This document shows, piece by piece, positions 1,637-30,434 of a stretch of 64,000 nt of DNA (positions are counted from its first letter, which is position 1; the number at the start of each line of letters is the position of its first letter). The stretch is taken from the sequence record MZ444140.1; one strand, 5' to 3'. The notes beneath the pieces are model-generated. The model was not told the origin of the DNA. It made no database searches and was given only the letters and a program-made list of their open reading frames with translations. Position numbers and translations under genes: made by a program.

Positions 1637-2458
<822 letters not shown>

Positions 2459-2480
2459 TTAGGTTCATTGAGGGTATTAC

Positions 2481-3014
2481 TTAACTTTCTAGATAACGGA
2501 TAGTCCCATTTTCTAGATAACGTGCTGCGCCATTCTCTAATAGCCGGATAGTATCCGATGTATCATCAATACGTTGAATTAGTATATTACATTCACCATA
2601 GTAAGCATAACTACTCGACATAGCTACTATCGTGTATGGAACAACATCCGTAGTTGCATTGATTGGTGTTGTATCAAATGAAACATCATCTGGTCCAAGC
2701 TTCCAACCCCGTGAACGGTTGATTTCTTCAGCAATTGCTTTAGGTGTTAAAGTACCAACTATCTTAAGGATAGATCCTTCACCAATAGCTCGTGGATCAG
2801 CAAAATCTAACCGACGGTAAGTTAACATGTACTTAATGTCAGTAGTAATGTCGATCATTTCAATAAATGTACGTCCAGGCTCAATCGTGGTTGGACTAAA
2901 AAACATATCTTCAAATGTAACTGTTTCTGGTTTGAAGTTTATTTTTAAATCATCCCGCGCAAGTTTTACTAGCGCGTCCCTCGATGCCATGTCATACGGA
3001 AAGATATCCTGCAT
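2481..3014 (-). CDS. Virion/tail-associated protein (gp143 equivalent) with C-terminal RxLENG repeats
   Basis: 177 aa; YRRLDF motif shared with the gp126/127-like ORFs; ends IRLLENGAARYLENGTIRYLES. Confidence 0.75.
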   Translation of the reverse strand: MQDIFPYDMASRDALVKLARDDLKINFKPETVTFEDMFFSPTTIEPGRTFIEMIDITTDIKYMLTYRRLDFADPRAIGEGSILKIVGTLTPKAIAEEINRSRGWKLGPDDVSFDTTPINATTDVVPYTIVAMSSSYAYYGECNILIQRIDDTSDTIRLLENGAARYLENGTIRYLES

Positions 3015-3061
3015 GTCAAACCTCTATAGTGGTAAAATGTTTAATCCACATAGCATTATAA

Positions 3062-3086
3062 AGCCTTCCTCTTCAAGAGGAAGGCT
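3062..3086 (-). terminator. Intrinsic terminator hairpin
   Basis: AGCCTTCCTC-TTCAA-GAGGAAGGCT perfect 10-bp stem with AT-rich flanks. Confidence 0.8.
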
Positions 3087-3096
3087 ATTATAGTTT

Positions 3097-3492
3097 TTAT
3101 TGCATAAGCATCTTTATTAATTCAAAGGTACCTTGCACAATAGTCTTTAACACATTGGCACTTTCTTCTGACATAGGTGCACCAGATAAAACCACCATAG
3201 TAGATACTGATGCCCCAATAAGAGTAACACCACCAGCTAATACTAATACCGCATTACGGTAAGAATCTTTAGCCTTCACTTCAGCAATTTCCCGGCTGAG
3301 AATTTTATATTGAAGATCTGAATCGGTAATAGCATAAATTCGACTAAGTACTTCTTCACCAGTTATACTTAGATTTATACGTTGTTCCTTTTCCAATACA
3401 CTATTTAAATAGGTACGTATCTTCTTTCCATAGTCTTTAGAAGAAGATAAAGGATTACCATCGATCTCAATCAGAACGTCCTCTAGGGTCAT
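3097..3492 (-). CDS. Membrane protein, holin candidate (gp142 equivalent)
   Basis: Start moved to ATG 3492 (GGAG RBS); hydrophobic helix AVLVLAGGVTLIGASVSTMVVLSG then an amphipathic C-terminus; lies between spanins and endolysin. The holin role is inference. Confidence 0.55.
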   Translation of the reverse strand: MTLEDVLIEIDGNPLSSSKDYGKKIRTYLNSVLEKEQRINLSITGEEVLSRIYAITDSDLQYKILSREIAEVKAKDSYRNAVLVLAGGVTLIGASVSTMVVLSGAPMSEESANVLKTIVQGTFELIKMLMQ

Positions 3493-3829
3493 GACTATTC
3501 TCCAAATTACGTTGACGTTCGTTCCATTCACGCAATTTGTCTACTTGGATATTACATAGTCCAAGTGCATCAGTTTGTAAAAGCCAATGTTCGGTCATAA
3601 GTAAGAAACGTGCTTCATTCTCATCAGTAACCCCAACAGCTTTATATCTATCTAATGCATTGATGATCTCATTAGCTGTAGGTGGGGCTTCTACATCACA
3701 AGGGAGAAGCAAACTACTTGGGATTGCAACTGGTATTTTCACGGGAGGCGGCACAGTAGTGCTCGTACATCCGTTTAGCAATAACATTAATAGACTTATT
3801 AATGCTATCTTTTTTTGTGTCAGTTTCAT
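3467..3829 (-). CDS. o-spanin (Rz1-like outer-membrane lipoprotein)
   Basis: From ATG 3829: MKLTQKKIALISLLMLLLNG-C lipobox, Pro-rich linker (VPPPVKIPVAIPSSLLLPC), helical C-terminus with Cys (LGLCNIQVDKLREW); overlaps the 3' end of the i-spanin. Confidence 0.8.
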   Translation of the reverse strand: MKLTQKKIALISLLMLLLNGCTSTTVPPPVKIPVAIPSSLLLPCDVEAPPTANEIINALDRYKAVGVTDENEARFLLMTEHWLLQTDALGLCNIQVDKLREWNERQRNLENSHDPRGRSD

Positions 3830-4220
3830 GTTTAATCTCAGTAGTGGTACTTTCCCCATTAGTTGTTTTAGCTTTAACCTCAGGCCATACAGGGGGAGTA
3901 TATCCACGACCTGATAAACTAATGTACTCATCAATCACCTCAGTGCGTGATTGCGCCTGCTCTTTTTGTATCTCTTTCTTTTTAGTAATTAGTTCAGCTT
4001 GAATTTTATCGGAGATACGGTCTGATTCAATCCTAACCTTTTCTGCCGCTTCATAAGATTTAATTTTTCCAATTAAATCTGTAGAGCGAACAAGTTCCGT
4101 CTCATAACTATTTTTGTAATATATGATACCAATTAAGGCACCTATCAGAATAACTAATAGTAACCATATATGCAATGGCACACTACCAATTATTTTTCGT
4201 ATACCTGCTAATAGGAACAT
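3714..4220 (-). CDS. i-spanin (Rz-like) (gp141 equivalent)
   Basis: N-terminal TM (IWLLLVILIGALIGIIYY), coiled-coil periplasmic region, two C-terminal Cys; partly overlapped by the lipoprotein gene. Confidence 0.75.
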   Translation of the reverse strand: MFLLAGIRKIIGSVPLHIWLLLVILIGALIGIIYYKNSYETELVRSTDLIGKIKSYEAAEKVRIESDRISDKIQAELITKKKEIQKEQAQSRTEVIDEYISLSGRGYTPPVWPEVKAKTTNGESTTTEIKHETDTKKDSINKSINVIAKRMYEHYCAASRENTSCNPK

Positions 4221-20554: not shown

Positions 20555-21430
<876 letters not shown>

Positions 21431-21438
21431 GGTGTGTA

Positions 21439-21882
21439 ATGGCTGATACAAGAGCTGAATTAGTAGCTGCTTGGAATGTGGCTAATAAACCTAAAGATAA
21501 TAATGGTAAGCCTAGGGATTTAACTGTTGATGATGTTGAATTTATAGGGACTGATACATTCTTAGCAACTGGTACAAATGCCAAAACAACAATGAGAGCG
21601 AAGACCAGTTCACTTTATTTTAAAGGTGAGACAGTTATTTACTTTAATAGACGCTCTTTACCAGAGTACTGTCTTGGTATAAAAGTACCGGGTAAACCAA
21701 CTGACTATACTGATAATTTAGAAGTAGCTGAAAAATTAAGAGATGTTTACGGTATTCCATTTATTATAGATGAGATACAACCGCAACCTATTACTGGGAA
21801 TACGGTTACGATACATCCATACTTTAATAACTTGTCGTGGATACCAACAATACCAGTAACTCTTGAATTTGAAAGTAGTTAA
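21439..21882 (+). CDS. Virion/tail-associated protein (gp126 equivalent)
   Basis: 147 aa; GAGGTG RBS; YFNRRSL motif weakly paralogous to gp127/gp143. Confidence 0.6.
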   Translation: MADTRAELVAAWNVANKPKDNNGKPRDLTVDDVEFIGTDTFLATGTNAKTTMRAKTSSLYFKGETVIYFNRRSLPEYCLGIKVPGKPTDYTDNLEVAEKLRDVYGIPFIIDEIQPQPITGNTVTIHPYFNNLSWIPTIPVTLEFESS

Positions 21883-28037: not shown

Positions 28038-28054
28038 GTAATATAGATCTTAAA
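28038..28054 (-). promoter_or_regulatory. Early (virion RNAP) promoter
   Basis: TTTAA-GATC-TATATTAC, matching the phiKZ early consensus (TATATTAC with upstream TTTaA); upstream of the nvRNAP-subunit operon. Confidence 0.8.
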
Positions 28055-28080
28055 CTTTTTTTAATGTAATACAACATAAA

Positions 28081-28100
28081 GCCCTCCCCGAAGGGAGGGC
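28081..28100 (-). terminator. MCP transcript terminator
   Basis: GCCCTCCC-TTCG-GGGAGGGC followed by TTTATGTTG on the minus strand. Confidence 0.85.
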
Positions 28101-28112
28101 CTATGTCTGTTA

Positions 28113-28190
28113 CTATTCTAACTTCCGGGCATTACCGTCTTCCAAATAACGGATAGTCCCATTTTCTAGATAACGGTAACCCTTTCCAGC
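28113..28190 (-). other. In-frame 25-codon extension after the MCP TGA stop (putative readthrough segment)
   Basis: TGA GCT GGA AAG GGT TAC CGT TAT CTA GAA AAT GGG ACT ATC CGT TAT TTG GAA GAC GGT AAT GCC CGG AAG TTA GAA TAG TAA = AGKGYRYLENGTIRYLEDGNARKLE; same motif as the gp143 C-terminus. Confidence 0.7.
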
Positions 28191-30434
28191 TCACGGCTTA
28201 AGATCAGCAAGCTTACCGTTGAACTGAGTTTCACCCATGACTTTCTGGAAGCCAGTGATCTTGAACTCTAGCGCGAACGGAATGTTGTTGACGTGTAGGT
28301 TGAACGGAATGGCCGCGATTTCGCGAGTAACCTGGTGACCACCACGAGTGATCGGTAGGTCAGCGATAACAGTAGATACGTAGAAGAACTGACCCCAGGA
28401 GAGGATGTCGTTTTCTTGTTGTACTGCGCGGGTCGGAATTACAACTAGCTTACCATCAAATAGCTGGTTGTTGGTGGAAACGATATCGTACTTGAGATAA
28501 GCACCTAGAGTACGGTCGTCACCTTTAGTCATTAGATAGTTAGCAATCTCTTTGTCGGAGCAGAAGAGATACATCGGAGTTTCATCCTGGTTACCGGAGA
28601 TAACACGGAAGGCAGCTTCAATGTTGGAATCACGGTGAGCCGGGAATAGCTCAGCTTTAACACAGTTTAGGATCGCAGCGCAAACGTCGTCCCAACGATC
28701 TTTAGACTTGATGGTGTCGATGACTTTCTCAAGATCTAGTTCTTTGTAACGATAGGTCGGACGCATTACAGCGGATAGTGCACCTTCGATGATACCAAAC
28801 TTCGGACGGTTGTAACCATTGTGTACAACTTCACGTAGTTGAGCAAGGTAGTTAAGCATGCGCTTAACAGCGTTGTTGCTGTTACGGATGTTGGTGTTAA
28901 CAGTTAGAGCTTTAACAACCTCACCCGGACCTTCATCGGTCATGGTGTCCATCGGTAGAGTTACAGGAGCGTGCATCGGGATCGGATGACGGAACTGTAG
29001 CGCACGGGTCTGTAGTAGGTGACCACGCTGACGACGGTTAGTGTTGGTGAAGCGAGTGTCTAGTTCGAAACCGATAACCGCTAGGTCAGTTAGCTGATCT
29101 AGAATAGCTTTAACAGCCGGGTCAGCATTATCCATTACCTGACCATCTTCGTTTAGAACTTTATCGACGTAAGTGTCGGTAGCACCAAACTTAGAATCGC
29201 CTTTGGATAGGCTGATTGTACCACCAAAACCAACGCTTAGACGTAGGCTTAGTTTAGCGGTCTTAAGATCATTGATAACACCGTCAGCTGAACCATCGAT
29301 GAAAGTGGTATCGCCACTAACAACTAGATCGTCGCTATCGAAACGGATAACAGCGTTCCGGGTATCACCAACTAGATCGGGCTGGAACACAGCGCGAGGT
29401 AGACGGTCAACCTTGAACTTAACAACTTTACCACCGAGTAGAACGAATAGGTTCTTTAGACGACCAGCCGGATCAATGGTGTCAGAAACTTCAAGCATGC
29501 CACGCTGGATGAGTAGGTTAGCATTGGAGTTACCCATTAGATCAAGACGTACGTTCGCTTTTAGCGGAGCAGTAGTGATAGTTAGGTTCTGCTCGTTCTT
29601 GATGGTGTACGGAGGAACAAGAGCCGGGTCTACGAAGAAATCAGCATTGGAGCCAGCCGGATCTAGGGCAGGAATTAGCGCAATGCTTTCGTCGTCGAGG
29701 ATGGAAGGATCACGATAGGCTTCTACCATGTTCACTTCTTCATTATCCATCTTAACGCCGGATACTTCGTGGTAAACGTCTTTCATTACAGCGATGTAAG
29801 GAAGAACCTGAACAACACCACCTTCAATCGGGTTGATAACGGTGGTCGGATAAATACGCTCAGCGAATTCATCTTGACGGCTAGCAGCTAGGTTATAACC
29901 AATAGTTACAACACGGAAATCACGCTGTGACTTCTCGTTATAGTTCTCTAGGCCAACACCATTTTCGAATACTTGAATGCCACCAGCAGGGCCATTGAAC
30001 TGATGCTGTACAACCTTAACATGATCTTCATTAGAAGCTTTAGCTTTGGTAATACCACGTAGTGCACGGATATATTTAGTTTCATCAGCACAGGCGATAG
30101 CAGCCATGGTAGCAGCAGTGATTTGGTTCTCACGGACACGTTCTTCACGAGCACGTACTTGAGGATCACTGGAACTTACTCGTTCGAAACCATAGTCGTT
30201 AACGAGCATTTGCATTTTGTTATAAATTGCAGCGGCATCTTGAATGTCGGTAGCTTGCACGGTACCGAAGTTTTCATGTGAAATGCTGCTAATAAGGGAA
30301 CGACCTTGACTAACAACGCTGTCATTTAGACCAATTTCACTTTCTAGGCGGCCAATGAAATCTTCCATTGAGAAGACTTCGTAATTCTTTTCGCCTTTGT
30401 GTTTAAACAGTTCTCTTAGGGCATGTACGCTCAT
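28191..30434 (-). CDS. gp120: Major capsid protein (phiKZ gp120 ortholog)
   Basis: 747 aa; strong codon bias; prohead-protease-type site VGLE|NYNE; length and position match phiKZ gp120. Confidence 0.93.
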   Translation of the reverse strand: MSVHALRELFKHKGEKNYEVFSMEDFIGRLESEIGLNDSVVSQGRSLISSISHENFGTVQATDIQDAAAIYNKMQMLVNDYGFERVSSSDPQVRAREERVRENQITAATMAAIACADETKYIRALRGITKAKASNEDHVKVVQHQFNGPAGGIQVFENGVGLENYNEKSQRDFRVVTIGYNLAASRQDEFAERIYPTTVINPIEGGVVQVLPYIAVMKDVYHEVSGVKMDNEEVNMVEAYRDPSILDDESIALIPALDPAGSNADFFVDPALVPPYTIKNEQNLTITTAPLKANVRLDLMGNSNANLLIQRGMLEVSDTIDPAGRLKNLFVLLGGKVVKFKVDRLPRAVFQPDLVGDTRNAVIRFDSDDLVVSGDTTFIDGSADGVINDLKTAKLSLRLSVGFGGTISLSKGDSKFGATDTYVDKVLNEDGQVMDNADPAVKAILDQLTDLAVIGFELDTRFTNTNRRQRGHLLQTRALQFRHPIPMHAPVTLPMDTMTDEGPGEVVKALTVNTNIRNSNNAVKRMLNYLAQLREVVHNGYNRPKFGIIEGALSAVMRPTYRYKELDLEKVIDTIKSKDRWDDVCAAILNCVKAELFPAHRDSNIEAAFRVISGNQDETPMYLFCSDKEIANYLMTKGDDRTLGAYLKYDIVSTNNQLFDGKLVVIPTRAVQQENDILSWGQFFYVSTVIADLPITRGGHQVTREIAAIPFNLHVNNIPFALEFKITGFQKVMGETQFNGKLADLKP

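Follow-up and report, generated by a model that had tools for sequence, protein, structure and literature searches.

The 64,000-nt stretch of record MZ444140.1 analysed here (the window) comes from a phage of the phiKZ species; over the region its identity is 100% to a record of Pseudomonas phage PA7 and 99.4% to phiKZ. At the 3' end of its major capsid protein gene a UGA stop codon is followed by an in-frame extension, hereafter the tail, which a minority of ribosomes may reach by stop-codon readthrough, yielding a capsid subunit with a C-terminal tag. The features of this locus, which lies on the minus strand, are listed below; all coordinates are window positions.

30434..28194, minus strand: major capsid protein gene (phiKZ gp120 homologue), 747 codons, taken from the open reading frame (ORF) list
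28193..28191, minus strand: UGA stop of the capsid gene, proposed to be leaky, in the context CCG UGA G
28190..28116, minus strand: in-frame extension of 25 codons with three Arg-x-x-Glu-(Asp/Asn)-Gly octads
28115..28110, minus strand: tandem stops TAG TAA ending the extension
28102..28079, minus strand: intrinsic terminator hairpin of the capsid transcript, directly 3' of the tail in all relatives

The capsid protein covers profile positions 1-635 of 635 in Pfam family PF25620 (PhiKZ_MCP; E 5e-228) and matches gp120 of PDB entry 8y6v over all 747 residues, the two being of equal length. The original prediction, made from the letters of this stretch, had described a capsid TGA followed by an in-frame 25-residue tail with three R-x-L-E units, closed by tandem TAG TAA just ahead of the terminator, and every one of these elements is present. 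The distance from the TGA to the terminator, given there as about 90 nt, measures 89 nt, and the accompanying remark that late genes mostly end in TAA holds as well, the stop codons of the 58 putative genes in the window being TAA in 43, TGA in 9 and TAG in 6. Members of the phiKZ species vary slightly here: one genome (PA7, JX233784) has GAG for the first of the two closing stops, TAG, which makes the tail one codon longer and ends it at TAA.

The 47 close relatives are all at least 99% identical and carry little information, so diverged phages were used for comparison. Capsid 3' ends were taken from phiPA3, PS119XW, Phabio, 201phi2-1, RVTF4, Psa21, Viktualia and 13 IMG/VR lineages, and 11 further lineages were added through capsid homologues. 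A TGA, an open in-frame tail of 24-30 codons and a terminator directly after it were found together in 25 diverged members of the phiKZ capsid family, a set that takes in phiPA3, PS119XW, Phabio, 201phi2-1, RVTF4, Psa21, Viktualia, Noxifer and 16 metagenomic lineages, and within which identity of the capsid C-terminal region drops to about 60% (Noxifer). Relatives with TAA or TAG at this stop, or with stops or frameshifts in the tail, had been named in the original prediction as evidence that would speak against it; the comparison returned TGA in 25 of 26 tail-bearing sequences, TAA in the remaining one, and no stop or frameshift in any tail. All six tail-less lineages of the same capsid family stop at TAA, with the terminator right after. 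The resulting two-by-two association of tail and stop (25/1 against 0/6) gives a Fisher p of 8e-6, uncorrected for shared ancestry. Noxifer is more distant from phiKZ than some of the tail-less lineages are, an indication that the tail has been lost more than once.

Two controls indicate how freely stop codons otherwise change in these genomes. In the same lineages the stop of the neighbouring downstream gene is TAG in seven, TAA in six and TGA in three, and the stop that closes the tail likewise varies among TAA, TAG and TGA; to judge from these alignments, the identity of the capsid UGA has been kept while the neighbouring stop drifts freely. A tail fused to the capsid protein by a sense codon occurs in none of 120 capsid homologues. 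Several capsid homologues (P0096-P0100) are labelled 'virulence-associated protein VapD' by JGI, which looks like an annotation error.

The tail bears the marks of a coding sequence. Over 547 codons frame 0 is free of stops; frames +1 and +2 contain 33 and 25, nearly every sequence having one to three there, and the length differences among relatives are whole codons throughout; the tail thus appears to evolve as a protein whose frame is maintained. In the peptide alignment all 20 sequences have the Arg, the Glu and the Gly of the first octad and the Gly of the second, whose Arg and Glu are each found in 19. The invariant Gly columns use three or four synonymous codons, one Arg column is written as CGG, CGT, AGG and AGA, and the synonymous sites of the tail are about 50-65% diverged. 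For the ten motif columns the synonymous divergence (pS) is 0.66 and the nonsynonymous divergence (pN) 0.11; because these columns were chosen by conservation, the low pN is partly circular and the high synonymous divergence is the informative figure. High synonymous divergence at conserved motif columns shows, at the level of the aligned sequences, that it is the protein, rather than the nucleotide sequence, that is under constraint there.

Frameshifting by -1 or +1, of the T7 10B type, was considered and rejected: the extension lies in frame 0 and both shifted frames are closed. Production of a separate small peptide, started by its own initiation or by termination-reinitiation and unfused to the capsid protein, appears extremely unlikely. 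Purine-rich, Shine-Dalgarno-like bases do follow the UGA in many lineages, and two annotators have called small ORFs here, but the tail always lies in the capsid frame, which an independent ORF would not need, and a usable start is hard to find. The window tail, already described in the original prediction as lacking an ATG of its own, has neither ATG nor GTG in frame; among the relatives, ATG or TTG appears in frame in a few lineages only, in differing columns, and no ATG, GTG or TTG is conserved. The ORF annotated in Viktualia lies in another frame. That annotation, a 32-codon 'hypothetical protein' crossing the capsid stop (L034, 1478..1576), is probably an artefact of gene calling brought about by the unannotated gap.

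The peptide encoded by the tail recurs elsewhere in the window, at the end of a small protein of the DUF7941 family encoded next to the endolysin.

3014..2481, minus strand: gp143, small DUF7941 protein, 177-aa ORF directly upstream of endolysin gp144
2484..2564, minus strand: C-terminal 27 residues of gp143, with three octads of the same motif
28140..28175, minus strand: 36-nt stretch of the capsid tail, 34/36 identical to gp143 bases 2487..2522
20558..21882, plus strand: DUF7941 paralogues gp127 and gp126, found with a gp143-family profile (E 4e-5 and 1e-3)

The resemblance of the tail to the C-terminus of gp143, pointed out in the original prediction, was borne out. The gp143 C-terminus is the best non-self match of the capsid tail in the window (E 2e-4), and the octad motif occurs there in these two places only, being absent from the paralogues gp126 and gp127. 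What the earlier reading had not seen is that the tail is, by its conserved residues, the module with which the whole gp143/DUF7941 family ends: the Arg and Glu of all three octads are invariant across 22 aligned gp143 homologues. The capsid tail and gp143 have 12 codons in common; of the 36 bases 34 are identical and the other two differ synonymously, which suggests a recent gene conversion in the phiKZ lineage; other lineages have no such DNA identity, and in most of them the tail DNA is unlike that of gp143.

Several lines of evidence bear on the nature of gp143 itself. It matches phrog_2935 ('virion structural protein') with E 2e-45 and the DUF7941 profile (PF25613) with 18.3 bits, below the cut-off of 27, and many of its homologues carry a precomputed PF25613 match. 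Its AlphaFold2 model has a predicted local distance difference test score (pLDDT) of 87, with residues 1-150 confidently globular and the tail lower (pLDDT about 70). The single significant PDB match of this model is chain 0 of 9xqd (E 1e-6; template modelling score 0.59/0.68), a 150-residue chain of the phiKZ outer peripheral baseplate, which agrees with the listing of gp143, together with gp126 and gp127, as DUF7941 proteins (preprint 10.64898/2026.04.21.720040). According to the same preprint, DUF7941 proteins form filaments and are placed at the baseplate, not the capsid; their linker or tail is predicted to dock on the N-terminal domain of another protomer, a head-to-tail model based on AlphaFold predictions and negative-stain filaments. 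The gp143 homologue of 201phi2-1 has been found in virions by mass spectrometry, according to its database record, and gp143 has also been described in a paper as a holin-specific lysis regulator.

The arrangement recurs independently, a point that the original prediction had not seen, in the distant E. coli phage Goslar. Identity of the capsid C-terminal region is about 31% there, yet a TGA again closes the capsid gene, with 28 open codons between it and the terminator (L025, 1186..1272), and two Goslar-like genomes (L042 and L043) have the same TGA-plus-tail arrangement; the Goslar relatives in IMG/VR are near-identical only and therefore uninformative. The Goslar tail has no octads. Within the 32-kb stretch holding both genes its best non-self match is the C-terminus of gp23 (E 0.003, computed at genome-scale database size), with 18 residues aligned and seven identical in a row, the next match having E 9.9. 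Goslar gp23 is a small DUF7941 protein adjoining the endolysin, and with about 2,140 copies it exceeds every other unplaced virion protein in abundance (preprint 10.64898/2026.04.21.720040). Since the phiKZ tail matches gp143 and the Goslar tail matches gp23, the pairing of a capsid tail with the tail of a small DUF7941 protein holds, as judged by sequence similarity, in two distant groups and with two unrelated peptides. In Burkholderia phage FLC9 the capsid gene also ends in TGA, with 18 open codons and then the terminator (L029, 1195..1251).

Eight other chimalliviruses (Ea35-70, RSL2, RTH11, LAh10, Proteus phage 10, SA002, SPN3US and CR5) have a constitutive extension at the same position, where 14-30 further residues precede a TAA stop. 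Like the phiKZ tail, these residues lie past the point where the phiKZ, Goslar and FLC9 ORFs stop; unlike it, they follow no intervening stop, so that every subunit is extended, and they are mostly of low complexity and without octads. The constitutive extensions (L026, L027, L028, L030, L046-L049) are often rich in Thr, Gly and Asp, and a Leu-x-Gly-Leu/Phe...Pro pattern in Proteus phage 10, SA002, RTH11 and Ea35-70 resembles the Goslar and FLC9 tails. A peptide at the capsid C-terminus is evidently tolerated, because these phages carry one on every subunit.

The existence of such extensions also lends some plausibility to the tail being a non-functional remnant, either an ancestral extension truncated by a nonsense mutation or a copied piece of gp143, under no present selection. 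Copying clearly occurs, as the 34 of 36 bases common to the phiKZ tail and gp143 illustrate, and the tail has been lost in six lineages. A remnant is nevertheless very improbable in our estimate, as 26 lineages keep the frame, whole-codon insertions and deletions and the motif residues in spite of synonymous sites diverged by about 50-65%; in most lineages the tail DNA is unlike that of gp143, the capsid stop stays TGA while neighbouring stops drift, and where the tail is lost it is lost completely, with TAA then in place of TGA.

At the level of RNA, the sequence following the UGA is predicted to be structured.

28125..28189, minus strand: predicted mRNA hairpin, a possible readthrough stimulator or a by-product of the repeats, beginning 4-12 nt after the UGA

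In the window, the 90 nt past the UGA fold as a long hairpin with a minimum free energy of -29.6 kcal/mol (z -4.6), and the post-UGA segments of all 18 relatives tested, Goslar and FLC9 included, are more stable than their shuffles (z -1.4 to -4.6). The repeat by itself creates complementarity, between the CGN codons of Arg and the GAC-GGN of Asp-Gly, and a stimulatory RNA structure after the UGA is possible on the basis of these models. The same folding might indicate an untranslated hairpin in the 3' untranslated region, acting in mRNA stability, processing or termination, with the peptide as a side effect; an outer 5-bp stem is conserved, and several third positions beside Arg codons are always C. 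We consider such an element improbable. The structures vary by sub-clade, compensatory changes are seen in two of eight consensus pairs, and no Rfam family matches the post-UGA region above noise. Moreover, an untranslated element leaves unexplained why frame 0 is free of stops when the other frames hold 58, why insertions and deletions are whole codons, why synonymous codons turn over at invariant Gly and Arg columns, and why the same peptide ends the gp143 family.

The hairpin bears equally on how the UGA might be decoded. Dedicated decoding, by hairpin-directed selenocysteine insertion or by a UGA suppressor tRNA of the phage, might make the extended form abundant, and a hairpin some 4-12 nt after the UGA, as in the bacterial selenocysteine insertion sequence (SECIS), as well as the conservation of UGA specifically and of no other stop, would fit it. 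This too seems improbable. The hairpins compared across lineages have no conserved SECIS-like apical loop, differ between phages of the same host genus and match nothing in Rfam; no tRNA gene was found in the window, the remainder of the genome not having been scanned; and the solved capsid was built with a 747-residue chain. A purine, A or G, follows the UGA in each of the 20 sequences that were aligned first, and a C follows it in Noxifer.

Comparative evidence, namely the conserved UGA, the coding pattern of the tail and the TAA of all tail-less lineages, supports the readthrough interpretation put forward in the original prediction. Selected UGA readthrough giving rise to a minor, C-terminally tagged capsid subunit is, in our judgement, a probable explanation of the conserved stop, open frame and peptide, of the linkage between tail and UGA and of the motif common to the tail and gp143. 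Most ribosomes would stop at the UGA and release the standard 747-residue subunit, and a minority would decode it, most simply with a near-cognate host tRNA, and translate 25 codons more, up to the TAG TAA. The product would be a capsid subunit carrying a C-terminal tag of three octads. Translation of the tail, its efficiency and its incorporation into the capsid are what we infer from these patterns. In the phiKZ capsid at 3.5 Å, the C-terminal arm, residues 728-747, forms a six-helix bundle with a pore of about 9 Å at each hexamer centre, and in pentamers it contacts the outer decoration protein gp244 (PMC11297242). Because the arm sits at the hexamer centre and contacts an outer protein at the pentamers, the tag would project from the centres of the capsomers; that it would emerge on the outside of the capsid is suggested by the gp244 contact only.

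It is tempting to assign a role to such a tag. Since it copies the C-terminal peptide of gp143, and in view of the tail-docking model for DUF7941 proteins, its likeliest role would be that of a docking peptide by which a fixed proportion of the capsid subunits is tied to DUF7941 proteins or to some other partner of the gp143 tail; we put this forward tentatively. The more specific proposal that the tail mimics the docking peptide of the small DUF7941 proteins (gp143, and gp23 in Goslar) is similarly speculative and takes two forms. In the first, the head would offer DUF7941 proteins or their filaments points of attachment, through tails borne by a few per cent of its subunits; in Goslar these proteins number more than 2,000 copies per virion and have no assigned place. 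In the second, it would titrate the partner of gp143 and so couple capsid production to lysis timing, gp143 being a modulator of the holin. On this proposal the UGA would serve as a valve for stoichiometry that has been kept across genera and gives way to TAA only where the tail is lost.

A number of observations weigh against this reading in whole or in part. At least 25 open codons follow the stop in 14 of the 58 window genes, mostly running into the next gene; since an open stretch of this length is not rare, one genome alone is weak evidence for the significance of the tail, and it is the relatives that supply it. Outside the motif columns the pN/pS of the tail is about 1, close to neutral. 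One lineage (L060, metagenomic contig SRR28494101_187731) has a motif-bearing 25-codon tail behind a TAA, after base 2644; either a recent change from G to A or readthrough of UAA might account for it. Covariation in the hairpin is weak, the RNAalifold consensus having only the eight pairs mentioned above. The published capsid model ends at residue 747; a tag that only a few per cent of the subunits bear would be lost in icosahedral averaging. The remaining points concern the link to the DUF7941 proteins. Capsid tails are no closer to the gp143 tail of their own phage than to those of others (permutation p 0.87, 10 genome pairs of the phiKZ clade), and gp143 is dispensable by transposon sequencing as well as being a reported holin regulator. 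The FLC9 tail bears a loose, not significant resemblance to the small DUF7941 protein of that phage. When a profile was built from four other Goslar DUF7941 linkers, it detected neither gp23 nor the capsid tail of Goslar, and a general DUF7941 'linker consensus' is for that reason not supported.

In phage Qbeta, low-frequency UGA readthrough of the coat gene yields A1, a minor C-terminally extended coat protein that is built into the capsid. The phiKZ arrangement, known from sequence comparison, resembles it in placing a UGA at the end of the coat gene and in the extended minor subunit that would result. Unlike Qbeta, a small single-stranded RNA phage with a large extension domain, phiKZ is a 280-kb double-stranded DNA (dsDNA) jumbo phage with a T=27 capsid, and its extension comprises 25 residues that duplicate the tail of another phage protein. 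Capsid isoforms produced by frameshifting are known from T7 (10A/10B), T3, Lactobacillus phage A2 and Listeria phages A118, A500 and PSA (PMC5009743). With these the phiKZ case would have in common recoding at the 3' end of the capsid gene and two products in a set ratio, one of them extended at its C-terminus; it differs from -1/+1 frameshifting at slippery sites in that the extension lies in the zero frame behind a stop, with the shifted frames closed. A third likeness is internal to the phage group: the capsid protein would end, where the tail is read, in a C-terminal peptide common to the small DUF7941 proteins (octads in Pseudomonas phages, and a different peptide in Goslar, whose DUF7941 proteins include gp22 and gp23), but it lacks the globular DUF7941 domain and would have the tail peptide alone.

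No description of a capsid readthrough tail was found in the literature on readthrough in phiKZ, jumbo phages and phage capsid genes, and the two structure papers and the Goslar preprint make no mention of readthrough or of any issue with the stop codon. Known capsid recoding in tailed dsDNA phages is frameshifting; if the present interpretation is correct, conserved readthrough of a capsid gene's stop codon would, as far as literature searches show, be new to this group of phages. Among nucleus-forming jumbo phages phiKZ serves as the reference, with capsid and virion solved by cryo-electron microscopy, and all models and annotations of its capsid protein end at residue 747, so a tagged isoform would add a capsid component invisible both to icosahedral averaging and to standard proteomic databases. 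It would likewise provide a lead on two questions, where the abundant DUF7941 proteins are attached and what binds the C-terminal peptide of gp143. For annotation more generally, a TGA with an open frame ahead of the terminator may mark hidden C-terminal isoforms.

The surroundings of the two loci yielded further observations. gp143 lies within a complete lysis cassette (window 1637..4220, minus strand), which agrees with the cassette described in PMC12894885:

1637..2419, minus strand: endolysin gp144
3097..3531, minus strand: holin candidate with a single transmembrane segment
3467..3934, minus strand: embedded lipoprotein ORF with a lipobox
3714..4220, minus strand: i-spanin-like ORF

Downstream of the capsid gene, a ATCTATATTAC-like motif stands ahead of the gp121 homologue (window 28038..28048, minus strand, and at the same place in L001-L024). 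Located about 30-60 nt downstream of the capsid terminator and kept in nearly all relatives, it is probably a phage promoter element.

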